64,000 nt of DNA, taken from Orbicella franksi. Lineage: Eukaryota. Under the pieces are notes generated by a model. It did not search any database. It saw only the letters and a program-made list of their open reading frames with translations, and had not been told where the DNA came from. Below, piece by piece: positions 1 to 63,613 of the stretch. Location of the stretch: NCBI GenBank assembly GCA_964199315.1, contig OZ116703.1:26040001-26104000 (forward strand), written 5' to 3'. The stretch's first letter is position 1. Every line of letters starts with the position of its first letter. The translations under genes and the position numbers were made by a program.

Positions 1-3000
1 GGTAGTATTCACCAACTGCCACGAGAGTAAAGCTGTAGCCGTCAAAAGTAACGTAATGACCTCCAGTCGATGATATTGCAATGGAGAGTTGCAACCAGTT
101 CAGAGACACCAGGGCAAGGGAACAGTCGGACCCAGTCCACCCTGAAGAGCACTTGCCACAGTCTAGTGTTCCATTGTAATTAGCAGTACATTCACATTCT
201 CCTGTGACGCTGTTACAGGCTCCGTTGTTGTTACATGGTGTTGCAGCTCCTCCGGGACACGGGTGTGCGCACTCTGAACCCCAGTAGCCATGGTCGCATA
301 CGCAACTCTCAGAGTCCAGCTTCTTACCAAAGACGCATTTCATGTCGCAACGCTCTCCAAACCAAATAGGAAAATCACGTCCAAGAAATTCATTACAAAG
401 TGGTTTGGCTGGCCAGACCGTTAGGTTGTTGATGGCCTGGCAGTAGTCAGCATACGCAATGATAACCTCCATGGACATGTACAAAGACCCAAAGCTTGCA
501 ATTCTTCGGAGGCAAAACCTGAAGTAAAACATAGACACACCTGGTCCCAAGGAGTGACAGTTTGAATACAGTGGTCCCATTAACAACGTTCTGTTACAGA
601 AAAGTTCAGCTTCAGTTTGTAAGGTTTTGTTCTTAAAGGGGAAATCTTGTTCTCTATCGTAGAAAGGCAGTTGCAACACTACATCGGAATACTTCCATGC
701 CGGTTTCCTCCATGGCTTAAAAGGAAGCTCGAGTTTCATACCGGTTACTTTGTCCAGAGCTTCGATTCCTTCACCTTCGTTGAACTTCCATGCGTGCGCG
801 AGATCTTGCGTTTCAACGCTCACCGATCTGTTCCAGGTCTGCAGAATGAACGCAGGATGGAAATAGCGCGTCCATATACGCACTTCATCTATGAATCCAG
901 CAAAGAAGTCAACAGGCTGAATTCCGGAGCCGTCCAGAGATGGTATCCAACTAGCTAAAGCGATGATGCCCCCTGGAGCAAAGATATCGAAACCAATGTT
1001 GATATCAAGGCGATGCAACTGGCCTCCAGACGAAAAGTAGTAGAAGTGCAATATTAAAGTGGATTTTCGGAACACAAGGCTAATCTGGTTCCATTTATTA
1101 AGCTCCGAGGCGATATTTGTATGGTACACGTTGTCTCCGTAGTAGATTGTAAACTTTCCTCCTGTGTTAGTCACAAAAAAGGTCTTACTCGTGGTATAGG
1201 ATATGATAACCCCGTACCGGACTGTTTTGAACATGAGCTTTACTGTTATGTCCGTGAAAGAGAATGCTTTGTAGATTACTCCCGAGACCACTGTAGTGTG
1301 GTCAAAGTAAAGTGCGTACCCGGCATTTGCATCGCGATATTCTACAATGTCCTTGTACTTATATTGAAACAAACTGTGGCATTCTTTGACCTTGAGCTTG
1401 GTGGTAATAAGGGTTTTTATAACATCTTGGGTCTTGGTCTTGCTATCGGACACGTTCGTTTCAAGTGACGAGTCCTCTGCTTGGTGGAAATTGTTGGGCT
1501 GGTTTCCGCTTACGTTGAACATAAAGCTTCCTTCAGAACAGTTTTTAGTTGGATGATAAGACACGAGCGATTCCAGCAATCCCTGGTTACAAGAGCCTAG
1601 TAGGCCAATTGCGGACTTGCACACCAAACCCGATGCGCTTGCACTTAGGGTCAAGTAGCGTCCTGTCACACGTATTTTCAGGTATAGCCCTGCATATTTG
1701 ACCTCCCAGAGATAAGCTGTGATCTTGTTAACCTCAAAACCGTAGCTTTGAAGAGTGATTCGATGCAAATCAATGTCGATGACTTTACCATTTAACCAGA
1801 CGATAAGGTTTCCACCAGATGTATAAGGCCCATGTAAAACAACTTTGTGCGAAGATATTTTAAGCGCGATGGAATTCACGCAAGATAGCTGTTGGAAGCA
1901 CGATACCAGACGAATTTGCACAACGACGGACAGATGGATAGAGTAAATAAGATAATACTCCCCTGTAATGTAAAGGCTGTAACTGATTCCACTGAGTGAT
2001 GTAAACTGTCCGCCAAGTGACACTGTCCCAACTCCAACCAAAACACTTCCAGATGGCCACTGCGTGACTGCTGTCGAACAATCTGTTCCAGCCCAACCAC
2101 GAGCACAAGCTGTGCAGTTTTCATTTCCTTGCCAATTAAGCTCACATGAACATTTTCCAGTTACGACATCGCAGATTCCATGATTGTTACATGCTCGTCC
2201 ACTCCCTCCTGGGCAAATTCCAGAGCAGTTTATGCCATAAAACCCTGGATCGCATATGCAGACTTCACTTTCATTTGAAGCTTGACCGAAAATGCAAGGG
2301 GTCGAGCAGTTCCTGCCTATCCAGTTCGGGAAACGCTTGCCAGGAAATTCGTTGCATAGAGATTGCGCTGGCCAGTAAGGCAAACCAAGCGTTTTCTGGC
2401 AGTAATCTGCAATTGTCACCACGGCATCGATAGATTGAACTGTTGATCCGGTGCCCACTACGGCTTCTACACAGGCGCGGAAATAAAACTCTAGTGTGAC
2501 ATTGCCCAGCCTCAAGCAAGCAGAATAAATTGGTCCCTTATAAATAAATCCGAAGCACACGTTAGTGGCGATACCTTGCAAAGTCACGTTGTTCTCATTC
2601 GGATTCAGTACAAGAACGGACGCGATGGGTGCATCAGAGAAGACCCACTTTGGCTCTTCCAAGGGATATTTTGGAAAGAATAAAGTTACACCGGAAACAA
2701 GGTCTTTAACGAGAGTATTTTCACCCTCGTTGAACTTCCACAAATTTGTAAGTGATGGAGCATTAGGCTGAATATTTGCTCGCCAACTTTGTTCAACTAA
2801 TGCATAATCAAAGGGTCTTTCCCAAACGCATATCTCATCTATTTGTCCAAAGAAGACATTTGTTGGCTGAACGCTTATGGATCCAGAAGCAGGTTGCCAC
2901 ATGCCAATAGCAAATGTTCCTCCAGTTACAAAAGGATCGACGGTAAAATTGAACTTTCGTACTTGCACAAGCCCAGATGAAAATGTCACAAACACAAAGA

Positions 3001-6000
3001 GTTCCAGCTTTGCACGAACAAATACAACGGAGATCTGATTCCACACATCTGTTTCAGTGGCAATGCCAGTGTCAAAGACATCCAGCCCGATAACAACTTT
3101 CACCGTCACGTGGTTGCTGATGAAAAAAGTCACATTGGATGTGTAAGAGATCAGAGTACCTCCACATAGACGAGGATCGCATGATTTTACTAAAAGCTGG
3201 AAGGTTAACGTTGGACTCACGAAGAGATCGACAACTTTCTCTGTGACAACAGCGGTGAAACGGTAGTAGAGACTGTACACACCACCGTACACAATTCGAG
3301 TTTCTTTGTGGATTTCTTCATCGATAACAATATCAGATCGTCCTCGGGCTTCAAGTGACAACTTTTCTAATACAAATTCATCAACGTCACCATCAGAGGT
3401 ATTTGATCCTCCTACCCCTTCTAGAACAGTCGTTAGTTCAGGTCCTTGAGTATCATTTTGCCCCGGTTGTAGTTTGGCACAAGAGCCGCACAAGCCATCG
3501 ACAATCTGACAGAAGGTAGTAGATACAGTTGACTCCACGCTTAGGTATCGATCTGTAAAGACCGCTCGTATGGACAAATACTGCGAAATGACAATCCTGT
3601 AGGCGGTATTGGATATAGGCTGAATGGTCACATTGTTTCTCAGCATATCTTTGGTGAGCTCTCCGCCAGCATTAATTGGTTCTCCGTTAACGTGCACGAC
3701 TGGCAATGAATCACTTTCGTAGGCCGCATGGACACTAATGGACAGTCCATTGAATCTCACAGCAACAGCATTAAGACACACAGAGCTCTTCTCGCAAGGT
3801 ACTTGTCGGACTTGCGCTTGAAGGATGGAGGAATTTATCATGATGAATTCGCCTAGTGTTGCAAAAGTAAATAGCGAGCCATCGAAGCCGGTGACATAAC
3901 CTCTCTCAGATATGGTACAAACTTTTGAAGTCTGATTTGCAACGCTGGGATCTGTTGTCGATATCGCGATAGAGCACGACCTGCCTATCCACCCTGGGGT
4001 GCATTTTGAGCAGTATTCATTTCCTTGCCAATTTGGATGACACTTGCATTCACCAGTTTCTACATCACATTGTCCATGTCCAAAACACGGGTTCCCAGCT
4101 CCTCCTGGGCACTCATTGGAGCAGTTCACCCCCCAGTACCCACTGTCACATTTGCACGTTCCATCAGAGTATTGTCCAACGATACACTTAGTTGTGCAGT
4201 TTGTTCCAACCCAATCATTATAGCGTCCTCCTGGAAGAATATTGCAAAGGCCTGCTCCAGGCAAAGTTGAAAGGTTCAGGGCGGCTTGGCACTCCTTTCC
4301 GAAGGCAGCTGCTGTTGTAAGAGCTGAGTCGAGCTTTCTTGAGGTAGACACTTCGGAAATGCAAGCTTCGTAGTAAAATTCGGATCCTCCAGTCACGTTT
4401 GAGCACTCATTGTATAGAGGACCTTTAAGGAAAATATCTGAACACAGCTCTTGGGTTACGTTGTCAGCTTCTTCTTCAGAGGGATCTGGTGTGATGAAAA
4501 CGTTGGTTTCTTTAATGGCATCGGAAGGATACCAAATTGGGCTTCTCCAAGGCGGGGTAGGAAGACTAAAATCTAACGATCCTACTGTCGCGCGACACAC
4601 AAAGCCACTTCCTTCATCGAACTTCCATAAGAGCGCAATCCCTGGTGTTTCTGCTACGAGATTGGTATTCCAGGTTTGCTGTATCATAACAGAATCGAAT
4701 CGTTTGTTCCAGAAGCTCAACTCGTCCACCCAGCCCACAAAGCCAGGCAGGGAGAGGGACACTTTGGTCACCTGCCAAAGAGCAATGGCTAAGGTACCAC
4801 CTTCGGCAAATATTCCTACACCAACGAAGAAGACTCTTGTTTGAATGACGCCTATTGAGTTAATGAGGTAGAACTGAACAAGACCCGAGCTCCGCCTGTA
4901 GACAAATGATATGTGGTTCCAAAGCTCTGTTTCAAGCACAAGTCCAGTGTCAATGACTGTAGTACCAAAGTGAATCATGACAGTCATATTCACAGCTATT
5001 GCAAAAGTTTCACTGAGGGCGTATGAAATAATAGTACCACCGAACACACGCGGATCCTTTGCCTTCACAAAGAACTGGATAGTGATGTAATTACCAACAA
5101 AAACATTCACCAGAGGTGCAGTGATGACAGACGTGCCATTAAAGTAGAGACAGCTTCCTCCTTCGCTAGTCGATAGTGATTCGCCAGAGATGTTTAGTAT
5201 GGGACCAAAAGAGCTCTCGTTTCGAGGGACAGACCACGAGGTCACGTAGGAGATCAAGATGTCTTGAGTTACAGTTGATATATCATGCGTATCTAAAATT
5301 CCTCCAGCTGTGCAGTTTGAGGGCAGCACGCTTGATTCAGGGTCGCGGCACCTCCCGAGGAGACCACAGACTTCTTGACACAACCATCTGTTCATTGTTA
5401 TGGAGACATCGAAGTGTACTGTGAGGGAATTGATAACAAAGTTGAAACCTCCTGGACCAGTCACCACGTACCTGTTGAGGGACGTCCGTTTAAACACAAA
5501 TCCTGAAATTCCAAGTGAAATCACGCTCTTGTAGCTGACAGGGGAGCCGTTGAGTGTAACCAAGACCTGGCCCCCGATTCCAATACTGCTGTGGATTGCC
5601 ATCACATTATCCCCTACACGCACAATTACACATCTTACACGTACGTAACTTCCGATTCGAACTTGCCGAAACTGGATGCTGAGTCCATAACGAACCAAGG
5701 CCAACACCTTGAATTCACCAGCTACATTTACGTTGATCTTGACGCCATCTAAAGTCACGTAGTAACCGGTCCCAAAGACCGACGTTATTGGGAGCTCTTC
5801 CGTAGGTGCTGTAACAGAAGCTGAACAGTCTTTACCAAGGAAACCAGGAGTGCACTGGCTGCAGTCAAGTGCTCCGCGCCACCTTCTCCTACAGCGACAT
5901 CTTCCACTACCACCTAAACAACGTCCATGCCCACTACATACGTTCACAGGTCCACCAAGGCATACTCCACCACACAGCTGTCCCCAGAAACCCCGGTCAC

Positions 6001-8601
6001 ACTTGCAACTTCCAACCAATCCCGTAGGTTGATATCCGTAGAGACAAGAAATGTCACAATTCACTCCTATCCAGTTCATGAGTCTTGAATTTCGGAACAC
6101 TTCATACTTGCACATCTGTTGCGCTGGCCACACAGTTAGGTTAGCTTGTACTTGGCACGTGTCTGCAAAAGCCACCACGACATTTAATCCAAAGGATACC
6201 TGACCAGTTGAAGCAATGACTCGTAAACAAGCTCTTACATAGAAAGCTACTGTCCCACCACCAAGCCCGCCGCAGGCGATACCAACAGGTGATTCCTGGA
6301 TGTTTTCATGGCACCACGTTTCTGCTTTGATTCTCATGTCGCTCGTTTTGAACTTTATTTCAGTGGTTACAGGAAGAATCTTAACATTCGCGTAACTGAA
6401 GATCCATTTAGGTGCCCTACGTACGGACGGAATGTACAAGTGGACTCCGCTCACCAGGTCGTGTATGACGTCACCCTGTCCTTCGTTGAACTTCCACAAA
6501 ATTGCAATATGAAGAGCGCTAGAAATCACGTTTACTCTCCAGCTTGTCTTGACATCTTGCAGGCTAAATTCACGGTTCCAGAAGCGTACCTCATCGATCA
6601 ATCCAACAAAACCTGGCAGTTTATCGTTCTCCGCTGTGTTCCCTTCAAGAGCTGGTATCCACTGCCCAATGGAGATCATGTTTCCTGTGTATAACGCACC
6701 GGCACTCATGGTTCCTGTGGCTTGACGAACAATACCAATGGAATTGATGTAATAAAAATGTATTGCCCCAGTGCTGTTGTAGTAAACAAGGGTGACTCGG
6801 TTCCAGGCCTCAACTTCTGGAGAAAAACCTGTGTCCCAGATCTCCACCCCAATGCGTACTTTTAGGGTTACCTGAATAAACACTGTCAGCGTTATTGTTT
6901 TGCTGTAGGTTAAGAGTACACCTCCAGGATTTCGTCCAGTAAACATCTTAAACAGGAGTTCTGCGGTAATGACAGAAGCATTTAAGACTTCAGGCATGAG
7001 ATCACTACAAACACCAACCCCTTTGAACTTTAAGGCGTATTCAGCACCTGTTGTAACTCTTTCTTCGTTGTAAGTTCCATAGTGGTAGAAGAAGAGGCTT
7101 TCGTCGATAGAAACTCGCCACGTTTCTTCCAGAGAACCACCACCTGTCACATTGAAGTCGTTGTCTCTGTTTCCGTCGCAGTTTCCGCACAGTGCATTTG
7201 TACCGTTACACAGCGATTGCTCAACATGGCCTGCAATGATAAGTCCTCTTCCTGAAACTCGAAGTTGAAACTTGAGATCTTCTAGTACATTGCTAAGAAC
7301 GTATGTAGTTGAAGATGTCTGCTCTAAGAAGACTTCACTGGCAATTTGAAGCGTTGTTGAACTGTACTCTGTCACACTTCCATTTATCCAAATAACCGGC
7401 CGCTCGGTCTCCTCATATGGTGCGTGAAATACTATTTTCCATCCGTACTTGAAAGAAAATGCTACTGCATTAATGCAACGAGATTCTCCATTGTGACATG
7501 GAACTTGTCTTAGCTGGCCATTGAAGTGGGCGCTTCTGACGAACCAAAATTCCCCGAGTCCAAAAAAGTTAAAGTGAGCGCTGTCGAAGTTGGTAAAGTG
7601 TCCTCCAAGGAAAGCAGAACATGTCGGCAACTGCGATACTGCCACAGCCACGGCGCAATCAGATCCTGTCCAGCCAGGTGTACAATTACTACAGTCGTTA
7701 TTTCCTCGCCAGTTCAAATCACATTCACAGGCTCCTGTCTTGACGTCACACTTGCCATGCTGGTTACAAGGATTGTTTCCGCCTGCTGGGCACTCACTGG
7801 CACAGTCTTCACCCCAGTATCCTGGACTGCATACACACAAGCTAGCATTGTTTCTGTCTACATTTCCGAAAACACACTTATAGGAACAGTCGGGACCAAT
7901 CCATCCCTGAGGAAAGCTCTTGGGAAACTGATGACACAGGAGTTGAGCTGGCCATGAAGGAAGATGGAGAATAGACTGGCAGTAGTCTGCATAGGCAGAT
8001 AATGCAATATAGGCGGTGTCCAAAGAACTAGAGGAATGAATATCGTAAACACATGCCTTGAAGTAAAACTGAGGAACGGCCGCGTTCAGTAGCTGACCAC
8101 ACTGTGTTTGTAATTGGGTGTCGTAAATAAGCTCAAAACACAGCTTATCGGCTAGAATTCCAAACGTGATGTTCGTAAACTGCACAGTTGAACTAACAAC
8201 TATCGATGGAAACACGTCCCGGACATACGAGAACTGCCACAACGGTTGACGGCTGATTACCTTAGGAAGGAACATGGCTGAGGAGCCGGATATACGATTG
8301 CTAACCACTCTGCCTAAGCCCTCGTCAAAAAGCCACAGGGCACTTAGCGTCGGTAATTCTTCTGGTATAACAACAAGGAAACTCTGGCGAACAAGAATAG
8401 TGTCCAGTGCAAAGGTCCAGATGCGAACTTCATCTATGCTTCCAAAGAATGGATGCAGTGGTACACCAGCGATATGTTCTTGTGTTATGTGCCACTGGCC
8501 AAGCCATAAAGTGCCACCGGAAGTAAACAAGTCAGGTCCTAGGTAGATCTGTTTGGTAAAAAGTTCACCTTGAGCATCTAACTGGTAGTAGTCTAGAACA
8601 C
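1..8601 (-). CDS. exon 35 (>=8601 nt, starts phase 1, open past window edge), LamG2 end through VWD7 start
   Basis: ctttcag|GTGTTC. Manual translation gives GSIDEVRIW, LWLFDEGLG, GGHFTNFDS, GTGYYVTLDG, GYVTGFDG, GGQFTSLSG and GGHYVTFDGYSF at the edge. The ORF track shows no stop-terminated ORF in this frame, consistent with no stop before position 1. Confidence 0.92.
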
Positions 8602-56600: not shown

Positions 56601-59600
56601 AATTTAGCCTGAATTTTTCAAGATACTCGTTTGTAATTCGTGTTACTCTTCTCCATCCTTAACCCTCCTTGTTTCTTTATGGTTTATTATTATCTCTTTG
56701 GTATTTTTCTATCCTTAGTGAACTACTCTTTTCAGGTTTCATTTAATTTAAAGGTAATTTTATACGTGGCCAAAATAACTTAACAAAAACGTGAGTGAGC
56801 TCTTCTAAAATAATACTAAAAATCGTTGTGTACCTGATTGATTCGTTCAGTGAGCGGTGAGCGACCCTTGTTATCCACCTTCAGTGTTCGATATGGACGA
56901 TCAGAATTATTCCTTGCTTTTTCCACGTACACAGTTCCAGCTGCACCATTCTCTACGTCACCAATCCCGCCAGCAGCTTCTAAGAAGCCATCAAAGAATC
57001 CTCCCTGGTAGTACAAGGCGACTCTGCCACCAGCGCCACCTCCCCCTCCTCTAGATGGGTCTCTATATCCACTGCCACCATTTGCCTGCAGTAGAAAAAC
57101 AAACAGCACTTTAGTGTATACAAAAACACACCGCTACCATGGACACATCTAATGTGAAAATAAGACGTGCACACAATAACATACAATAGAGCGGTTTTCA
57201 ATTGAGTGTCGAAAGTAATCGGACAATTACTTTGGTTTTGGTATTTGTTTTAAATACGGTCTGAGACTGGCTGAGTAGGTTAGTAATTAGTTTGGTTTTG
57301 GTTTTACGACACCCAGTTGAGAACCATTCTACCAGACATGAATAAAACAAAGCTCACTTTTCCCACAATACTTTTCAGACAAATTTTCTATGGTCATATG
57401 ATTTAATCTTATCTTGCATAGAGAGCCGTTACACTCCGCTCGTTCTTATCACTTTTTAATATGTAGTCGTAAGGCACCAACGCTATATTACAATTAGATA
57501 CTTGAGATCACCGTTCACCGCAAACGACAAACTGCTAGGGGTCAGGTGACCAGAGCCAGACGTCAGGTATTTCGAGTCCAAGACACTGACAACAGATTTA
57601 ATCGTTATAAGGTTTAGATGATTCAACGTAACAGAAACAACCAAAACAATTTTTCATGTTACAAAAGCCTTCTCAGTTTCCGTATTGTAAACACGCCCGG
57701 CCACATAAATATTTCAGTTACACAGCCTGTGATAACTTAGAACAAAAACCGGTTAAGTTTGCAGTCGAGGATATAATTAAGTGGCGCCACTAATTATGCA
57801 CAACATTGCTTCCAATTGCAAGTGACTTGCTCAGGCTTGCTCAGGTTTGAATAGCTAATTGAACTAACCTGCACAGTCCCACTTCCTTCCAATGTAACAG
57901 TTCTAATAAGAATACTTCCACCACTACCTCCCCCAGCGTATGAACCAACATAGTTGTCGCCATCAGCACTCAGCGTTCCCTCTATGTCCAATGTGTCGCT
58001 GATGTTGAGGAATAAAATACCACCACCTCGGCCTCCGTGCCCACCACCGCTTCCCTTGCCACCACTGCTGCCTGTTGATCAAACATCACCATTAATCAGT
58101 TTACTCGATTAATTAACGATTTTCATGATACCCACACGAAGGTTATCACAATCATAACGACACTAATGGTGCCATAAGCCAATCAGAGCTTGACGTAACA
58201 ACATATACCCGCCGATAAGCGCAGGAAAATGGATGACAGGCGGCAAGCACGGGAAATCTGGTAACCAGCGGCAAGCACGGGAAAATATGGAACCGGCGGC
58301 ACGGGCAAGAAAATAAGTAAACCAGTGGCAAGCGCAAGAAAATATAAAACTATCGGAAAACAAACGCGGTAAGTAAGGAAATGAACGTAGCCGGCGGTTA
58401 GTGCGAGAAGACGTGTAATGGCGACAAAGGCGGGAAACCTCGTGTAATTTAAATTATGATCTTCGAATGTTGTTTGAAAATGACTCGAAGAGAATAACAT
58501 CAATCGTTTGGACGTAAAAGGGACATTGATTGCAGTCACTTGGCCAAGAATAAGAAAGATCTACTTTCTTCTTACAAAAGTGATATATTTCAAGCGGAGG
58601 AACCAAGAATAAAGAAAATCATCGACACGTCGCTAACACGCTAAACAGAAATCTGAACAACCCCAAAGTTAAGCTACTAAGCTCATGTGAAACATCACTC
58701 AAACTCACCAAAGTCATTGGGTTGTTTTAGTGACCCATATGAAGCTCCCGTGGTCACTTGACTCGCAGCACGTCCGCCCAGTCCCCCGTGACCTCCACCT
58801 GATCCTCCGGCAAAGCCTGGGGACGGAGAGTTTGCACCAGGACCCTTACCTGTAAAGTTAATCGCGACAATCAAAATAATTAGAAAGATACCTAAGTTGC
58901 CAAAGATGAGCCGCCAGCCCGTAAGTAACACTTAGCTCTGTTTTTTTGCCGTGGCTTGAGGCAACTAGTTCATCACAAGTAACCCTACCACCCCTCCCTG
59001 GTCGCTGAGAATTATGACTTTTATGACACGTTCATCAGAAATTATCTCTGTTCACTTGCTACCTACAGCGATTTTGGCGAAGTCGTCAACTATATGTTAG
59101 AACGTTTTCTCAAAAGAGCATTTCCTACAATAATAGCCAAGCGCGCGAATGACGTTATAATTCAGACAAACTCAGACAAACAAAACGGAATGGTGGAAGA
59201 TTTGAAGCTCTTCCAAGCGCGTAAACAAGTGTTCCTAAAACAATTTTTAAAATGAAAATTTGGCGTTCATTTTCCTCCTATTTCTCTCAGAACACTCTTA
59301 TGATGTCTGACTCTCACGAGGTTCCAATAATTTACATTTTATTTTTAGACTTCGCGCGCTTCGTCATTAAGTCACGACAGGAAAACAGGACACGAAAAGA
59401 GTACGAGCTTGGTTAGGGTCAAGAGATGAAAGATTACCCGCTAAAGAGAGCTTTTCATATAAAGGCAACATAATACATTTCGATACAATACCAGATTACT
59501 AGACCGAAGTAAACATACCATCGTAAACAAAGCTCTGTCCCTTTAAAGTTGCATGGACGGTAGCTAAAGCATCGATGGTAAAATTCAGGACGTGCACATG

Positions 59601-62600
59601 AAGATTAACTGCTGTAAACGTTCCTCCGCCGAACACATGCATAGATGTCCCACGGAATTCACGAACTCTTTCCTGATTGGTCACCGTCATGGTGCCCTTG
59701 TTTCGAACGCTGATTGACTCGAAATAAAAGGTCTAGAAATGAACGATAAATCACATGTTAGTAACAGTGTATATTGCTATTGGTCTGTAACCGAAGTAGA
59801 TAACTAAATACGCTTCACTGTGCAGTACAACATTTCCTTAACACCCCAAATAAGCTCGGTGAGTTCGGTTCTTATTTAGGAACCCCTTTATAGCGACCAC
59901 CCAATTAACACGAGCAGACTTTGGCGATTTTAATACATACTTCCTACTCAAGATTCATAGTTGCTGGACTCATGAACTAACCAATCAGAGAAAACTGTTT
60001 TTTTATGTAAAATCAACTTCTAATTCAATTACTAATAAGGGGCATTGGTATACTGATGTCGGCCTGTTGGTGTAATTGAATCACTTTCTCAAACCTTTGT
60101 AACCTTTTAACGCGTTTACAATCAGTTCGCAAGCATTTTTGTTGCCAAAAGCCAAAAAAACATCTTAAAAGCCTGATAAATCTTAAGAAGTTGTTATGTG
60201 AAGGATCATTGTAACGGCATCAAGGGCTACACATTTCACTTACCTTGGTCGGCTTTCCCTCTGTATCATACATCTCCTTCATTCGAATAAGACCATCATC
60301 AACTACTGTAATGTTCTGGCATCTTCTCAAAACACCATCAACCTCGACAGTAACCCCGGCAACAAGCAGTTCTCCCTGCATTGCTGTTAACCCCCCCTGG
60401 TAAATGATCATGTCCATGGGGAGGTACGACTGGAGGGAGAGGAAAGTCTGGTTGTAGCCCAAATGGATTCTCCCGGTTCTATCTCCTTCCATTTGACCAA
60501 TCACGATTGAGATATGCGCTTTGGTGCTTGTCGGATTTATGATGGCTAGCTGCGCTCCACCGTAAAGTTGCAACTCGTCCAGTTCAACATCAGTTCCGTT
60601 TGTTTCCAGATCCTCATCATCCAATGTGAGCCACGCCCTGCTTGATCCACCGTGACTGAAGTCACTGTAGCTTGCGCCAAGATTGGCGTCGGGAATTAAA
60701 GGTTTTCGACCCAGCCCGTTTAGGTACAAAGTTCTGTTTCGAGTCCACCGTGTCCCGTTGATAACGTCTTCATCCAGAATTATTCTTTCCGCGTGTGCTG
60801 CTTCGTCGATACGGTCGTGCCCATAGGTAGCGTTCATTCCGGGCACATTCTCTAGAAACACTGTACCTGGACCACCGGGTTCGTACGGACTGGTGCCCCC
60901 TGCACCGAGAAACCGACCCAGGAAGTGGTTCTCGCGATAGTACAAGCAAACACGACCACCCCCACCTCCACCTCCGTAATACCCGGTTGAGCTGTCCCCG
61001 TCGCCACCGGAGACGTCAAATTCTCCGTCGCCATGTAATCTTGATGTGTACGCTAGAATACTCCCTCCACTTCCACCGCCGCTGCGAGAAGCCCGTGCAG
61101 CTCCCCCTTTAGAGGATAATACTCCATCAACTACTAACGTATCGTGAGCAATGATTTTAAACCGGCCTCCACCTAATCCGCCTGTGAACGGAAAAGCCTC
61201 GGCTCCGCCCGTGCTTCCAAATGTCGTGGGTCTTCTGTACTTCCCGTATGAGACACCGACCTTTGACTGGCCTTTACCCAGCCCTCCGTGACCGCCATGC
61301 CCTGCACCAGAGGAGCCGGAGACACCACCCCACCCGTCTCCATAGTAACGTAATCCGGGAATTTCATCAACAAGGCTATCACCTGAGAGGTAAGCGAAGG
61401 GTTCCACAGTGATGTTCACGTAGTCTAAAGTGAGACTATTTGCCTCCATCTGAGAAAAATCAAAATAGAATAGATTAATACGCACAACTCTTCAGTCTTG
61501 GTAAAACGTCTAATAACGACTTGGAGTTTTCGTCCCAAGCCCGTGTGCACCTTTTCTTCCGGAAACCTAAGACCTTCGACCACCTCTTCAAAACGACCAG
61601 TTAATCGTTCTTAGGTTCTCCACAGCAGATACGTTTAACTGCGCATGCTAGGATCACTACGAGTCAACAATAAAATGGAAAGTACAATTATGTTTGGAGC
61701 AAAGCATACTTGTTACCCATGGCGTGGAGTACACGCACGACTTTGAAAATAAACTAGACGAAAAGGAGGATTGTTATCATTGTTAAACCAAGTTCTTGCA
61801 ATGAGGAAAGTTTCAATATCTCGACTCTATTTCATAGTAATAGCTTATGTATCAAGGCTAATGATGCGTATAAAAATGTAATGGCATATAAACGATAGTC
61901 CCCATGCCATTTAGCGCGAAAATATAATATGCTCGGATATTTGTCCCTGGACATTACAATTATCTGCTCTGAGAAGCGAGCAGTTTTCCGAGAGAATATC
62001 TTGAGGAAAAATATAAGCTTTGAGAAACAGATGATGTCCAAGGACAAATATTTATCCGAGCATATTTTTGCGCTGAATGGAGGCTATTGTGTCAATTATC
62101 CTTCAAAACGTTTTCGCAACACGGTCAGTTTTGAAAGTGGGGAATATCACTCGGAGATTCCCCAGTTTTAGCTGGGGCATATTCAGTTACGTGAAGCGTT
62201 TGAACCATGAGGCTACCGCGCCTCCACACGAAGTGAGTGTGAGGAGCATTAAAAATGTGTTCTTTGAGATTGAAAATTATAGACGGTAAACCAATGTGGA
62301 AATCAGGTAATTTGTACAAGCTAACTACTTCATTAAAGCTATAGCAATGTCTAAGGTGTTTTATACATTAGATGTTCTGATCTGTTCATACACTCATTGT
62401 TCTGGTCTGTTTATACATTAGCTGCTTCAATCCTAGGTGTCGCCTTGTTTATTTTCTATTCCAAATTGTCAGATGGCTCTGAATTATCGGCAGGGAAATT
62501 GAAAAATGACTCGAAATCCATTACGTGGTCTTTTGCATCTGTTTCAGAAGGGATCCTCGTGCAAACAAAAACGAGTGTGATTTGAATGAAGACAGACGTT

Positions 62601-63613
62601 CAAATGAAACATGTTCTCATATGAATGGTTTCGGACGAAGACCTTTAAATACAGAGGCAATAGGCATCTTTCGACAGTATGCTCATCAGAAACAGTAAGA
62701 TCTACAGAGATGAATTCGTCAAACAAGACAATAGGCCATTTTACAGAGGCAAGCGAGGCTGGAGGTGACCTTGCTTTAATACAGACCTCTCTGCTTTTCC
62801 ATTTAAATGCCAACTTATTAGCATTAGAACAACTTGATTTACACAACAAAAGCAGTGAGGTCTTTATCAAAACAAGGTTACCTGCAGCCTCGCTGCCATT
62901 CAAAGGCCAGGGGCCCGTTTCTCGAAAGTGGCGGAAACTTTTCGGGTCCGCAAAGCCCATTTTGGATAATCTCTATCTAAAAACCGAGAGGTATACACGC
63001 CCGAAACTCCTCGTATGAAGAGAACCTCTGTTCATATTAATAATACGTGAATAAAACAGCTCTGTAATCATAGGGTTTGAGGTTTTGCTACAGCTTTCCG
63101 GGTGCGAAAACTTTTCGGGACCTTCGAGAAACGGGCCTCAGGTCACTGAACAGACAACTGTTAAATGTTCTATTCAATGTACAATCTACTGACCTTAGCT
63201 CCCCCTCTAATGTCAAACGTTTTTCCAATCATCCGCACATCTTGTCTGTCTTCTCTGGTAGCCGCCATGTAACCGTCCGTCTGCACAACCACGTGATCTA
63301 AGGCGAATTCCGTTTCAGTGGAGTTCTCAAGAATAAACCGACACTGCGGTCCAACAGTAAGATTCGTCATTTCTCCCATCACACCTCGCATCGCTACCTC
63401 GACTCCACGACAGTTCATACTGCTGGGAAAGGTCACATTGGAACCTTTTTGTGACAGGAGCGAGAATGGAAGGTGTCCCTCCGAGCCCCTCATATGGACG
63501 GTCTGGGTGGGGCGCACGGTTAGGATACCACTGCTGTCGCCAACAATTTTGTCCACGCTCATTTTCACGTTATTCCCAGATATCGACAGGCTTCCTTGGC
63601 CCATAATTTGCAG
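1..63613 (-). CDS. Giant multi-exon extracellular protein, partial at both ends (35 exons, 43,357 nt, >=14,452 aa): Gly-rich/beta-solenoid repeats + tenascin-type EGF array + repeated VWD-LamG-C8-EGF modules
   Basis: All long minus-strand ORFs end at GT donors and resume after pyrimidine-tract AG acceptors. Every junction is phase-compatible and repeat motifs continue across junctions (e.g. GGAK|MEANS, YS G|VGC, FIV R|LQDS). The summed exon length is 14,452 codons + 1 nt, matching the phase at the window edge. Confidence 0.93.
8814..11826 (-). CDS. exon 34 (3013 nt, 0/1), EGF-VWD1-LamG1-C8-EGF-VWD2-LamG2(start)
   Basis: ttctctag|ATATCT ... TCTACAG|gtaaga; VWD motifs (ITLDG, GLWGNCN), LamG/pentraxin motifs (WNHIALVW, FIGQIDEVRIW, LWKLNEGDG). 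Confidence 0.95.
11930..12215. mobile_element. degenerate MITE-like element (TAGAGCGGTTTTCAATTGAG terminus family), intron 33
   Basis: left end tagaacggttttcatttgagtatcgaaagtaat is nearly the same as 57187; degenerate inverted right end ttttacaaccctc...aaaacgcttta. Confidence 0.6.
12458..12587 (-). CDS. exon 33 (130 nt, 2/0), not in ORF track
   Basis: cttcacacag|ATTGCA ... AACAAT|gtaagt; reads RLQDSYPIAWIVAFPVSNERNAAVVDSSMVHSMRCTDSEAQMNN and is the phase bridge needed between exons 32 and 34. Confidence 0.85.
13062..15351 (-). CDS. exon 32 (2290 nt, 1/2), EGF repeats plus start of a non-EGF domain
   Basis: ttgcacag|GGATTG ... GTAAG|gtacga. Confidence 0.92.
16107..17273 (-). CDS. exon 31 (1167 nt, 1/1), EGF repeats
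   Basis: tttttag|GTTGGA ... TGGAGTG|gtaagc. Confidence 0.93.
17778..18107 (-). CDS. exon 30 (330 nt, 1/1), EGF repeats
   Basis: tttcaag|GTTTCT ... CTACCAG|gtaggc. Confidence 0.92.
18531..19154 (-). CDS. exon 29 (624 nt, 1/1), EGF repeats
   Basis: ctttaag|GTGTTG ... AACAGAG|gtaaaa. Confidence 0.93.
19329..20894 (-). CDS. exon 28 (1566 nt, 1/1), last Gly-rich unit U then start of EGF array
   Basis: ttttgcag|GTGGTA ... TACTCAG|gtaaga; switch from Gly runs to C-x-C..GW.G..C repeats near 20470. Confidence 0.93.
21399..22068 (-). CDS. exon 27 (670 nt, 0/1)
   Basis: ctttaag|GTTTCT ... ACTGCAG|gtacga. Confidence 0.87.
22775..23070 (-). CDS. exon 26 (296 nt, 1/0), unit T
   Basis: atttcag|GTCCCA ... 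AAAGAG|gtgagc. Confidence 0.9.
23606..24013 (-). CDS. exon 25 (408 nt, 1/1)
   Basis: ttatcag|GCGGTC ... CACGGAG|gtctgt. Confidence 0.88.
24626..25369 (-). CDS. exon 24 (744 nt, 1/1), unit S
   Basis: tttttag|GTAAAT (GKFRSVGG..AAGTVYK) ... AAAAAAG|gtgggt. Confidence 0.88.
25773..26015 (-). CDS. exon 23 (243 nt, 1/1)
   Basis: ttttcag|GCGGAG ... TTTGGTG|gtacgt. Confidence 0.9.
26230..30879 (-). CDS. exon 22 (4650 nt, 1/1), units O-R and start of S
   Basis: gtgacag|GTTTTA ... GGCGCAG|gtgagt; lies within the 1597-aa ORF. Confidence 0.95.
31190..31539. mobile_element. MITE (350 bp) with perfect 17-bp TIR and 3-bp flanking duplication CAT, intron 21
   Basis: GGTTGTTTACCATTTAC at 31190 and GTAAATGGTAAACAACC ending at 31539; cat at 31187-31189 and 31540-31542. 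Confidence 0.88.
31778..32030 (-). CDS. exon 21 (253 nt, 0/1), unit O
   Basis: gtcgtag|ATTACA ... GGCACAG|gtgagt. Confidence 0.9.
32797..33540 (-). CDS. exon 20 (744 nt, 0/0)
   Basis: tttgcag|GCTGTG ... ACTAAG|gtaaat. Confidence 0.9.
33786..34195 (-). CDS. exon 19 (410 nt, 1/0), unit N
   Basis: tctacag|GTAGCG ... GGAGAC|gtaagt. Confidence 0.88.
34412..34787 (-). CDS. exon 18 (376 nt, 0/1)
   Basis: atacgcag|GATATC ... AATTCAG|gtgagg. Confidence 0.88.
35564..36582 (-). CDS. exon 17 (1019 nt, 1/0), unit M
   Basis: ttttccag|GCCACA ... CTTTTG|gtatgt. Confidence 0.92.
36802..36979. mobile_element. Tc1/mariner-pogo-like MITE (CAGT...ACTG termini), intron 16
   Basis: cagttgaacccggctatttcgaactc ... 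gagttcgaatattttagggggctccaactg followed by TA; left TA appears mutated to TG. Confidence 0.65.
37083..38048 (-). CDS. exon 16 (966 nt, 1/1), unit L
   Basis: ccttaaag|GTTATG ... GGAAAAG|gtaagg. Confidence 0.92.
38339..45777 (-). CDS. exon 15 (7439 nt, 2/1), units F-K and start of L
   Basis: ttgactag|GGGCGAG ... TTCATTG|gtaagt; lies within the 2543-aa ORF. Confidence 0.95.
45969..47482 (-). CDS. exon 14 (1514 nt, 0/2), unit E and start of F
   Basis: ttttcag|GCTACA ... CTTCAAG|gtaaga. Confidence 0.93.
47910..48135 (-). CDS. exon 13 (226 nt, 2/0)
   Basis: ttttttag|GCAGCT ... TATAAG|gtaaga. Confidence 0.9.
48484..49381 (-). CDS. exon 12 (898 nt, 1/2), unit D
   Basis: cccgttag|GCTCTG (GSAGAGHGG) ... 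ATTCTCAG|gtaagc. Confidence 0.9.
50637..50904 (-). CDS. exon 11 (268 nt, 0/1)
   Basis: tttttag|GGTCAT ... TCATCAG|gtagat. Confidence 0.88.
50964..51106. other. assembly gap (143 N) inside intron 10
   Basis: run of n characters; flanking exons join in phase 0, so no exon is required in the gap. Confidence 0.99.
51171..51965 (-). CDS. exon 10 (795 nt, 0/0), unit C
   Basis: gtcattag|CCCGGC ... GCTCAG|gtactt. Confidence 0.9.
52269..52439. mobile_element. palindromic MITE (AATAGGCCATTT terminus family), intron 9
   Basis: aataagccatttcc / ggaaatggcctgtt (12/14 inverted match); internal inverted arms caaaacgagtcttcgtgcaaaacc vs ggtttcgcacagactcgttttg; a degenerate relative of the core lies near 62545-62660. 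Confidence 0.75.
52547..53074 (-). CDS. exon 9 (528 nt, 0/0)
   Basis: ttttag|GGGTCA ... GATTTG|gtaaga; GAGHGG, YGSFDLPLNFGSGGG. Confidence 0.9.
53203..53536. mobile_element. MITE with CAGGGCAG...CTGCCCTG termini (hAT-like ends), intron 8
   Basis: 8-bp perfect inverted termini; direct repeat AGAACT abuts both ends (53197-53202, 53537-53542). Confidence 0.75.
54011..54496 (-). CDS. exon 8 (486 nt, 0/0), end of inserted domain and resumption of unit B
   Basis: tttcag|TATTGT (YCHQ) ... TACCAG|gtgaaa; ALSEVKVF then DSSRTWL, VDELDIRGHA. Confidence 0.88.
55296..55409. mobile_element. short palindromic MITE-like element, intron 7
   Basis: gttatttgccgacc ... ggccggtaaaataac imperfect inverted ends; internal arms aaaagctgtgccctcg / ctcgggtacagattttt. 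Confidence 0.6.
55425..55691 (-). CDS. exon 7 (267 nt, 0/0), N-terminal part of an inserted discoidin/F5-8C-like domain
   Basis: tactacag|GTTGAA (VEEIKLYPG) ... TATCCC|gtatgt; LCDGN and IHHIRIYP motifs. Confidence 0.8.
55810..56130 (-). mobile_element. 5'-truncated non-LTR retrotransposon 3' end (L2/CR1-group LINE), intron 6
   Basis: translation PRANLKTYGESAFFVAAPRLWNPL...FKANLKTYLF* matches the typical C-terminus of L2/CR1-type ORF2; followed by a 3' stem AGCGCCA/TGGCGCT (55852-55883) and a (TTTA)n tail. Confidence 0.88.
56834..57085 (-). CDS. exon 6 (252 nt, 0/0)
   Basis: actgcag|GCAAAT ... AATCAG|gtacac; GGRVALYY, AAGTVYVE, LKVDN. Confidence 0.9.
57187..57331. mobile_element. MITE (TAGAGCGGTTTTCAATTGAGTGTCG TIR), intron 5
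   Basis: 25-bp imperfect TIR (20/25 by eye) with cgacacccagttgagaaccattcta; same family as 11930-12215. Confidence 0.75.
57869..58071 (-). CDS. exon 5 (203 nt, 1/0)
   Basis: tcaacag|GCAGCA ... GTGCAG|gttagt; GGGSGGSILI motif. Confidence 0.9.
58214..58345. repeat. degenerate minisatellite-like array (about 5 copies of [G/C]GGCAAGCACGGGAAAA-like motif, 25-30 bp spacing), intron 4
   Basis: ataagcgcaggaaaa, ggcaagcacgggaaa (x2), ggcacgggcaagaaaa, ggcaagcgcaagaaaa. Confidence 0.7.
58709..58849 (-). CDS. exon 4 (141 nt, 1/1)
   Basis: tttacag|GTAAGG (GKGPG..GGGHGG..YGS) ... GACTTTG|gtgagt. Confidence 0.9.
59139..59361. repeat. 11-bp perfect inverted repeat pair bounding 223 bp, possible MITE remnant, intron 3
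   Basis: aagcgcgcgaa (59139) and ttcgcgcgctt (59351); no clear target duplication. Confidence 0.4.
59519..59732 (-). CDS. exon 3 (214 nt, 0/1)
   Basis: atttctag|ACCTTT (TFYFESISV) ... TACGATG|gtatgt. Confidence 0.88.
60244..61449 (-). CDS. exon 2 (1206 nt, 0/0), Gly-rich unit A
   Basis: ttctcag|ATGGAG ... ACCAAG|gtaagt; contains GAGHGG, GGGSGGSIL, GGRV, GPGTVF, LDELQLYGGA. Confidence 0.93.
61890..62092. mobile_element. long-hairpin (foldback) MITE-like element, intron 1
   Basis: arm catttagcgcgaaaat..atgctcggatatttgtccctggacatt pairs with atgtccaaggacaaatat..tccgagcatatttttgcgctgaatg. Confidence 0.72.
62730..63174. mobile_element. palindromic MITE (AATAGGCCATTTTACAG terminus) interrupted by a nested insertion, intron 1
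   Basis: aataggccattttacag / ctgttaaatgttctatt (14/17 inverted match); internal hairpin gaggctggaggtgaccttg..ctctgctttt vs aaaagcagtgag..caaggttacctgcagcctc. Confidence 0.78.
62911..63138. mobile_element. PIF/Harbinger-like MITE (228 bp) with CAG target duplication, nested in the 62730-63174 element
   Basis: gggcccgtttctcgaa / ttcgagaaacgggcct TIRs (15/16); cag at 62908-62910 and 63139-63141. Confidence 0.85.
63194..63613 (-). CDS. exon 1 in window (420 nt, phase 0/0), second half of a Gly-rich/solenoid unit
   Basis: acceptor tgttaag|CTGCAA (LQIMG); donor GCTAAG|gtcagt. An upstream exon is required but lies outside the window. Confidence 0.85.

Follow-up and report, generated by a model that had tools for sequence, protein, structure and literature searches.

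A coral locus that probably encodes a giant membrane-tethered surface protein of glycine-rich β-helices, EGF repeats and VWD–LamG modules

Does the 64,000-nucleotide stretch of the Orbicella franksi genome analysed here (contig OZ116703.1 of assembly GCA_964199315.1, positions 26,040,001 to 26,104,000; hereafter the window) carry one gene or several, and what kind of protein could such a locus encode? A preliminary description, made from the sequence alone, had proposed that a single gene fills the window and that its product is a secreted, rod-like filament of matrix, mucus or skeletal matrix. The reading favoured here, to which we give a probability of about 0.6, is that most of a single stony-coral gene lies in the window and that this gene encodes a type I membrane protein of giant size, which acts as a tethered structural or adhesive filament at the cell surface. 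Giant surface proteins shape the hold of epithelia on coats, cuticles, skeletons and neighbours, and few are known beyond flies, worms and vertebrates. The present gene, which corals and sea anemones both conserve and whose transcripts occur in a number of independent RNA data sets from corals, would extend this short list by a new architecture.

Open-frame analysis of the window places the gene on the minus strand, a point on which the preliminary description is silent. This strand contains frames of 2,890 codons (2-8671, running off the window edge), 2,550 codons (38166-45815) and 1,597 codons (26171-30961), together with further long frames at 8782-11826 and 13055-15373; chance cannot produce frames of this length. 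A dynamic-programming gene finder that scored codon usage, allowed only GT-AG introns and kept the frame, and that was built independently of the earlier exon list, returned 33 exons and 14,446 codons with zero stops. Comparison with RNA contigs revealed two additional exons (55425-55691 and 12458-12587) and led to four revised boundaries. For exon 30 the acceptor was shifted on the periodicity of the EGF repeats, and that of exon 17 was shifted from 36699 to 36582 on sequence alone because the dropped stretch is a translated polypyrimidine tract ending in CAG. The final model comprises 35 GT-AG exons and 14,477 codons, has no stop and is open at both ends, compared with the 35 exons and 14,452 residues proposed previously for a gene with both termini beyond the window. 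Two or three junctions that were not checked against RNA (3|4 and 17|18 among them) may be off by a few codons.

The frame is still open at base 1 of the window, and the 3' end of the gene thus lies beyond it. At the other extremity exon 1 starts in the middle of a repeat unit, either at position 63613, which resembles an acceptor, or at the internal ATG of position 63604, and lacks a signal peptide. Exact look-ups with the products of exons 1 and 2 for the N-terminus matched only contigs of 1.3-2.9 kb, and in one short contig no coding frame is present in the 786 bases that precede exon 1. A 4,133-nt RNA contig reaches 3,323 nt upstream of 55694, where the modelled exons total ~2,470 nt, an excess that suggests extra exons upstream of the window. 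An Rfam scan of the window gave no match.

RNA contigs and raw reads were aligned on two segments of the window (50500-56499 and 11700-17699, 12 kb in total), and support 10 of the 34 junctions (6|7, 7|8, 8|9, 9|10, 10|11, 11|12, 30|31, 31|32, 32|33 and 33|34). Spliced joints with GT..AG borders were observed at 50904|51171, 51965|52547, 53074|54011, 54496|55425, 11826|12458, 12587|13062 and 15351|16107, while at 55691|56834, 50637|49381 and 17273|17778 the loose ends of contigs match the next exon. Contig depth is ~19-123 in exons versus ~0-10 in most introns, and no pile-up of molecule ends was reported in the 12 kb. A single RNA contig of 16,353 nt runs through exons 34, 33, 32 and 31 in order and continues on both sides, joining the EGF to the VWD exons. 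Exon 15 (~7.4-7.6 kb) occurs in many coral RNA runs, which contain 69-82% of its sampled words. The end of the glycine-rich half and the start of the EGF half lie in one open frame in exon 28, and the two halves are therefore fused in one product. The 35 in-frame exons without a stop, the 10 RNA junctions, the 16,353-nt contig, the fusion within exon 28 and the lack of an end pile-up together argue for one gene, as had been claimed.

The window contains an assembly gap, a run of N at 50964-51106 that falls inside the intron at 50905-51170. In contigs of two RNA runs (X1 and X3) and in four raw reads of a third (X24) position 50904 is joined straight to 51171 with GT..AG borders, and one repeat unit aligns unbroken over this junction. 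The gap therefore does not interrupt the coding sequence or its frame, and hides no exon in these transcripts.

What does the glycine-rich half consist of? An iterated profile identified 21 units between model residue 1 and ~8,680, in line with the roughly 21 solenoid-like units counted before. The units span ~380-570 residues, most of them 380-410, with inserts in the longer ones; each ends in the motif G-x-G-T-V-Y-I, and the periodicity continues over exon borders. Pairwise identity among the seven units lying in single exons is ~30%, which indicates that the array is old and not a recent expansion. The units matched no model in Pfam or NCBIfam. An AlphaFold2 model of one unit, computed with the 126-sequence alignment described below, is all β (predicted local distance difference test (pLDDT) 96.5, predicted template-modelling score 0.92), and its top matches in VIA-align are the secretion domains of EtpA (Z 16.5) and HMW1 (Z 15.4), followed by tapirin, VacA p55, tailspikes, autotransporters and lyases (Z 16.5-9 over 50 solved β-helix chains). 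Foldseek returned no match to the unit in the PDB below E 1e-3. In the ESM Atlas the whole fold resembles that of a mollusc cluster (template-modelling score (TM-score) 0.89) and a Lentisphaerota cluster (0.79), and the AlphaFold DB clusters and ESM Atlas contain matches in uncharacterised sea cucumber, mollusc, plant and many bacterial proteins. As modelled, the unit is a right-handed parallel β-helix, a prediction that bears out its earlier assignment as a solenoid. In an alignment of 126 sequences (the units of the window and their relatives) the invariant or near-invariant columns are glycines and only D64, S317, R352 and T382 besides. Such glycine-dominated conservation argues for selection on the fold of the unit rather than on a catalytic site.

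Inserts were seen in units 3 and 7, among others. At the start of unit 3 there is a ~160-residue insert (54284-55691, exons 7-8), ending ..ALSEVKVFVGRE, in an RNA-supported exon, and a relative from Diadema carries an insert that resembles it (..ALSEVEIYVGE). A discoidin (F5/8C) identity was considered for this insert and rejected: neither exon piece matched Pfam, and phmmer found no match to the true F5/8C domain that lies inside the first unit of the Saccoglossus relative. The insert is left as jelly-roll-like. Unit 7 is split by a ~95-residue, Cys-bearing insert rich in N-glycosylation sequons (~44604-44883, exon 15), where the unit profile breaks into two rows.

The glycine-rich half is followed by the long EGF array that had been noted from the sequence (Table 1), which Pfam types as teneurin EGFs (EGF_Teneurin and EGF_TEN, E down to 4e-47). 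The array is organised in a four-EGF super-repeat of 131 residues (393 nt), the DNA copies of which are only 63-84% identical, which makes collapse of the array during assembly unlikely. A marginal Pfam match to DSL (Delta/Serrate ligand) is located at the start of the array in exon 28 (20259-20391; E 1e-5, with 26.1 bits where the cut-off is 24.2). At 17062-17275 the RNA contigs from two runs step back by 151-214 bases, which is most simply explained by assembler misjoins among similar EGF repeats and calls for caution with contigs in this array. Between the array and the modules described below lies a domain of ~150 residues without a Pfam match, the middle exon of which (12458-12587) is RNA-supported. 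The same domain opens the relative from the brittle star Amphiura filiformis, where it stands just before five modules.

The remainder of the window encodes six complete modules and the start of a seventh, each of ~610-650 residues and built from three EGFs, a VWD domain, a pentraxin/LamG domain (Laminin_G_3) and a helical, Cys-bearing, C8-like domain. Pfam recognised VWD in the modules at 1.4e-30 and 6.3e-20, and Laminin_G_3 was also matched; a module profile run against solved structures identified the VWD of FCGBP (1.5e-22), neuronal pentraxin (2e-11) and MUC5AC. Module 3 was modelled with AlphaFold2 from an alignment of 66 sequences, ten divergent rows having been left out (pLDDT 92.8). 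Foldseek gave only partial matches to this model, all with TM-scores, normalised to the whole module, of 0.28 or less. These comprise the D assemblies of MUC2, VWF, MUC5AC and zonadhesin, the VWD domains of SUSD2 and MUC4, the EGF–LamG regions of Crumbs, agrin and pikachurin, laminin LG domains and pentraxins. The module ends in a domain of four to five helices (model residues 528-604), and the alignments to the MUC2 and VWF D assemblies cover query residues 101-607. Of the serial VWD-LamG-C8 modules proposed in the preliminary description, the VWD, the LamG and their order stand, as does a companion remark that pentraxin/LamG is placed between VWD and its C8-like partner. The 'C8' itself is helical and can be superposed on the D assemblies of mucins and VWF, and the Pfam scan of the modules matched neither C8 nor a following TIL. 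The GDPH autocleavage motif is absent from the seven VWD starts in the window, the translation having been read by eye, and the VWD-LamG-helical order was not seen in any reviewed protein.

How does the protein end? A search with the last exon found collinear frames of 4,777-4,892 residues in seven other anthozoan clusters, one of which is the 90%-identity cluster marked as the window's own; five aligned frames are 48-93% identical. The 2,866 last-exon codons in the window align to the first ~2,845-2,885 residues of the orthologues, which run 1,920-2,070 residues further (~1,930). This continuation consists of three more modules, then one transmembrane helix and a tail of ~100 residues; the orthologous last exons hold seven modules, giving nine in the whole protein. 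In twelve related frames the hydrophobic helix has a Kyte-Doolittle 19-residue mean of 2.9-3.7 and lies 80-270 residues from the end. The 19-residue hydrophobic segment is followed by a basic cluster and then by the conserved tail. Among the eight closest orthologues this tail terminates in SAL, SAV, SHV, TNV or SFL seven times and in SAM once. The S/T-x-V/L ending resembles the pattern of class I PDZ ligands. Judged by its orthologues, the coral protein probably has type I membrane topology and a length of ~16,400 residues or more (14,477 + 1,934), to which its upstream part must be added; with over 16,000 residues it would be one of the largest proteins of animals. As the orthologous frames end in a transmembrane helix and tail, the VWD-LamG modules would be membrane-proximal and the β-helix units distal. 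The modules would therefore lie toward the C-terminus, as stated previously, but next to the membrane and ahead of the helix and tail rather than at the very end of the chain.

Orthologues were found across Anthozoa, and frames resembling exon 15 (~2,500 residues) are kept open in more than 45 protein clusters at 40-96% identity. In several relatives the exon encoding units and the exon encoding modules occur on contigs of the same size (343,376, 906,323, 136,382, 60,865 and 1,600,744 bp, and 432,851 bp in Actinostola, where the gene numbers are adjacent), and in the 1,600,744-bp case the contig id is also the same; presumably the two exons share one contig in each. Public annotations of relatives are split (QZH41_003343, 003345 and 003346 in Actinostola; OS493_002940 and 002941 in Desmophyllum, with several hypothetical proteins on one contig), which likely reflects fragmentation of one giant gene and serves as a warning that the locus is routinely broken into several 'hypothetical proteins'.

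On the favoured reading the ectodomain would comprise, from its distal end to the membrane, at least 21 β-helix units, ~49 EGFs, the small domain and nine modules, followed by the transmembrane helix and the ~100-residue tail, and the protein would most likely form a surface filament of great length, tethered to the cytoskeleton and serving structure or adhesion. A scaffold beneath the membrane may hold the filament by its tail, the VWD and LamG modules near the membrane may make lateral or ligand contacts, and the EGF rod would be a spacer. The β-helix units could offer large flat distal surfaces to polysaccharide, matrix, mineral or another cell surface. Textbook values for the rise are 0.48 nm per β-helix rung and 2-2.5 nm per EGF. 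With ~16 rungs per unit the 21 units would extend ~160-170 nm, the ~49 EGFs ~100-120 nm and the nine modules some tens of nanometres, so that by rough arithmetic the filament could reach a few hundred nanometres.

Several points weigh against this reading. RNA supports 10 of the 34 junctions, and the other 24 rest on the gene model. The anchor and tail lie outside the window and are read from the 90%-identity cluster and other anthozoans, and the signal peptide is assumed. The PDZ-like ending is only a three-residue pattern, from which one close orthologue departs. The length estimates rest on textbook rises and not on a model of consecutive units, and we infer the dimensions, binding and biological role of the protein. 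The split annotations in Actinostola and Desmophyllum and the 24 model-based junctions would also suit a window with more than one gene, such as one for the β-helix and one for the VWD part, or with isoforms that are independent of each other. This is very improbable given that the frame is kept through 34 introns, that the unit periodicity crosses exon borders, that exon 28 fuses the two halves and the 16.3-kb contig links the EGF and VWD parts, and that the split models look like pieces of the same locus on one contig. The preliminary proposal of a secreted filament of matrix, mucus or skeletal matrix survives in part. A long filament is retained as a proposal, but secretion is not, since the orthologues retain a transmembrane helix and conserved tail; a membrane precursor with a shed ectodomain that works in the matrix remains a variant. 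The extracellular character claimed earlier is supported. Abundant disulfide modules and the 192 N-glycosylation sequons of the protein model would fit a secreted or shed product, as would the ectodomain peptides of many transmembrane proteins reported from coral skeletal proteomes (PMC4890752). The text consulted in that paper describes nothing matching the present architecture, and no GDPH motif was read at the seven VWD starts of the window. An unanchored or shed filament is accordingly unlikely, though it is the strongest of the competing explanations.

Two further alternatives concern function. The transmembrane helix, the short conserved S/T-x-V/L tail, the weak DSL match and the EGF–LamG matches to Crumbs, agrin and pikachurin could point to a signalling or polarity receptor in the manner of Crumbs or of Notch ligands, with a huge ectodomain for sensing contact and a tail for recruiting PDZ proteins. 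As the DSL match exceeds its cut-off by little, the TM-scores to Crumbs are ~0.2, and more than 8,000 residues of β-helix in which only glycines are conserved look structural, such a receptor seems improbable, rather more so than a secreted filament. The units might instead be enzymes, polysaccharide lyases or hydrolases that form a surface-bound glycan-processing array, since alginate epimerases, pectate lyases and phage depolymerases are among the proteins that match their fold (Z 9-12.5). Adhesin secretion domains score above these enzymes, the 126 units conserve almost only glycines and display no acidic or basic catalytic cluster, and Pfam matched no lyase or hydrolase; this is the least credible of the explanations considered.

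To which known family, if any, could a tethered filament of this kind belong? Bacterial two-partner secretion (TPS) and autotransporter adhesins (EtpA, HMW1, FHA and Ag43) have the same right-handed β-helix fold and likewise form long surface rods of stacked helices. The coral protein is not a member of their sequence families and lacks the TPS or autotransporter export parts: the unit gave no Pfam or NCBIfam match to a TPS domain or β-barrel translocator, and spliceosomal introns are removed in the RNA. In contrast to the bacterial adhesins, the coral β-helices have their own set of glycine-rich motifs, and the animal gene that encodes them contains introns and joins them to EGF, VWD and LamG domains and to a transmembrane helix. 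Proteins with D assemblies (zonadhesin, FCGBP, gel-forming mucins, VWF and otogelin) also carry VWD domains in series, each with a helical C8-like domain after it, and zonadhesin likewise ends in an EGF, a transmembrane helix and a short tail; the coral modules differ from them in the pentraxin/LamG inserted between VWD and the helical domain. No mucin PTS (proline-, threonine- and serine-rich) region is present, serine and threonine making up 9.2% and 7.1% of the region with no PTS stretch. VWDE, like the coral protein, pairs VWD with teneurin-type EGFs, and Pfam Vwde (PF26129) is among the precomputed matches of the orthologues, faint in the one relative for which strength is shown. VWDE, described as a secreted class (PMC9117669), has one VWD and no LamG, β-helix units or membrane anchor, in contrast to the nine LamG-bearing modules and orthologue transmembrane helix here. 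VWDE is absent from the top 30 Swiss-Prot structural matches of module 3, and when exon 34 was used as the query of a word-indexed protein search, the matches were all anthozoan orthologues, none of them named VWDE.

Teneurins and tenascins share the EGF repeat type. Across all large minus-strand frames Pfam detected EGF_Teneurin, EGF_TEN and EGF_2 as the only features of teneurin kind, and no NHL β-propeller, YD/RHS shell, toxin-like C-terminus, FN3 or fibrinogen domain; the precomputed Pfam lists of the orthologues, which include the unseen C-terminal part, likewise hold no FN3 or fibrinogen. In addition, teneurins are type II proteins, whereas the orthologues, with their helix ~100 residues from the C-terminus, predict type I for the coral protein. 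The Gly_rich model of ALK/LTK (which we take to be PF12810) gave no match at E≤0.01 in the unit-bearing frames, and ALK was not among the Foldseek matches in the PDB. No G8 domain, which in fibrocystin, PKHD1L1 and CEMIP accompanies the β-helix (PbH1) repeats, was found in the window; there is a sub-threshold G8 match in the sea-urchin (Diadema) relative (E 0.0028), and G8 is present in some bacterial fold neighbours. Drosophila Dumpy, PKHD1L1, usherin and Crumbs combine a huge modular ectodomain with one transmembrane helix and a short tail, which in several has a PDZ-binding end, and PKHD1L1 also has parallel β-helix repeats. The domain sets of these proteins (ZP/DPY, IPT/G8, FN3/LamNT) differ from that of the coral protein, and the likeness to these giants is one of analogy, not membership. 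By these comparisons the coral protein falls outside the teneurin, tenascin, mucin and bacterial adhesin families and differs from VWDE in its nine modules, their LamG domains and the predicted anchor, consistent with the previous exclusion of teneurin, tenascin and mucin. As also anticipated, no characterised protein with this domain order was found in the literature or among named proteins. Literature on glycine-rich β-helices in choanoflagellates and cnidarians, on giant cnidarian transmembrane proteins, on coral skeletal proteomes, and on DUF8003, PTSG_11389 and PF26129 yielded no description of it. The fold classes are all known, the unit family is unnamed, and no description of the domain combination was found.

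The unit family itself is widespread. Against 1.84 billion cluster representatives the unit profile had 11,606 matches at E≤1e-3 and 3,263 at E≤1e-30, and the named relatives are all labelled 'uncharacterized' or 'hypothetical'. Among them is XP_077861759.1 of Saccoglossus kowalevskii, in which 13 stretches match the unit and which has a true F5/8C domain and a signal peptide; its model, unlike the coral protein, is without an EGF or VWD part. Other relatives occur in Diadema antillarum, the sea anemone Actinostola (QZH41_003345 and 003346) and Salpingoeca rosetta (PTSG_11389). The animal and choanoflagellate relatives inspected carry whole units. Bacterial relatives, the 'beta strand repeat' or 'right-handed parallel beta-helix repeat' proteins of Verrucomicrobiota and also proteins of Lentisphaerota, mostly match, among those inspected, only the glycine-rich second half. 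Giant bacterial surface proteins (P0215, P0221, P0222 and others) display 37-49% local identity to this half. The sharing of the unit between PVC (Planctomycetes-Verrucomicrobia-Chlamydiae) bacteria and holozoans could reflect either common ancestry or old gene transfer. By sequence comparison, sharing with ambulacrarians (echinoderms and the hemichordate) and a choanoflagellate is shown for parts of the protein.

A broader proposal, which we hold tentatively and at somewhat less than even odds, is that the protein founds a family of giant type I membrane proteins that has gone undescribed and is older than the cnidarian/ambulacrarian split. Its distal half would consist of adhesin-like glycine-rich β-helices that have no Pfam model and are shared with choanoflagellates and PVC bacteria, and it may be a tether of the kind long sought between the cnidarian epithelium and its surface coat, substrate or skeleton. 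The locus would provide the first animal context for the very large unnamed family to which its units belong, and the protein is a candidate for coral surface adhesion, anchoring of the mucus layer or tissue-skeleton attachment. The coordinates of all features are given in Table 1.

Table 1. Features of the gene and of its predicted product (coordinates in the window).
Feature	Coordinates	Strand	Remarks
Window part of gene	1..63613	(-)	35 exons, 14,477 codons, both ends open
21 Gly-rich right-handed β-helix units	20557..63613	(-)	model residues 1-8,683 of 14,477
Exon 1	63194..63613	(-)	gene model; model start ATG 63604
Exon 2	60244..61449	(-)	gene model; unit profile continues across exon
Exon 3	59519..59732	(-)	gene model
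Exon 4	58709..58891	(-)	gene model; acceptor may be few codons further in
Exon 5	57869..58071	(-)	gene model
Exon 6	56834..57085	(-)	donor spliced to 55691 in RNA
Exon 7	55425..55691	(-)	absent from first model, recovered from RNA contigs
Exon 8	54011..54496	(-)	RNA supports both junctions
Exon 9	52547..53074	(-)	RNA supports both junctions
Exon 10	51171..51965	(-)	RNA supports both junctions
Gap-bearing intron	50905..51170	(-)	spliced out in RNA (51171 joined to 50904)
Exon 11	50637..50904	(-)	RNA supports both junctions
Exon 12	48484..49381	(-)	acceptor side in RNA: loose end at 50636 matches 49351-49380
Exon 13	47910..48135	(-)	gene model
Exon 14	45969..47482	(-)	gene model
Exon 15	38339..45777	(-)	7.4 kb, ~6 units
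Exon 16	37083..38048	(-)	gene model
Exon 17	35564..36582	(-)	acceptor corrected from 36699
Exon 18	34412..34787	(-)	gene model
Exon 19	33786..34195	(-)	gene model
Exon 20	32797..33540	(-)	gene model
Exon 21	31778..32030	(-)	gene model
Exon 22	26230..30879	(-)	4.65 kb, ~3.5 units
Exon 23	25773..26015	(-)	gene model
Exon 24	24626..25369	(-)	gene model
Exon 25	23606..24013	(-)	gene model
Exon 26	22775..23112	(-)	gene model
Exon 27	21399..22068	(-)	gene model
Exon 28	19329..20894	(-)	end of last Gly-rich unit and DSL/EGF start, uninterrupted
EGF array	13403..20457	(-)	1,733 residues, 292 Cys, ~49 six-Cys EGFs; opens with weak DSL match
Exon 29 (EGFs)	18531..19154	(-)	gene model, Pfam
Exon 30 (EGFs)	17778..18107	(-)	donor from RNA; acceptor from EGF periodicity only
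Exon 31 (EGFs)	16107..17273	(-)	RNA supports both junctions
Exon 32 (EGFs and start of ~150-residue domain)	13062..15351	(-)	RNA supports both junctions
~150-residue domain	12482..13402	(-)	exons 32-34, no Pfam match
Exon 33	12458..12587	(-)	absent from first model, recovered from RNA contigs
Exon 34	8814..11826	(-)	acceptor 11826 in RNA
Exon 35	1..8601	(-)	first 2,866 codons only
Module 1	10012..12475	(-)	EGFs, VWD, pentraxin/LamG, helical domain
Module 2	7925..10011	(-)	spans intron 8602-8813
Module 3	6101..7924	(-)	structure-modelled, pLDDT 92.8
Module 4	4235..6100	(-)	module comparison
Module 5	2345..4234	(-)	module comparison
Module 6	386..2344	(-)	module comparison
Module 7 start	2..385	(-)	cut by window edge

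Within the introns, islands at 55700-56300, 52300-52500, 53100-53500 and 11930-11963 reach RNA depths of up to ~10 times that of the exons (maximum 585, in run X1), and many reads at these islands continue into sequence that does not match. The islands probably represent repeats or mobile elements that are transcribed within the introns and lie outside the product of this gene. Short tandem repeats are found in introns at 58240-58345 (28 nt, 3.8 copies) and 17487-17548 (32 nt, 1.9 copies).

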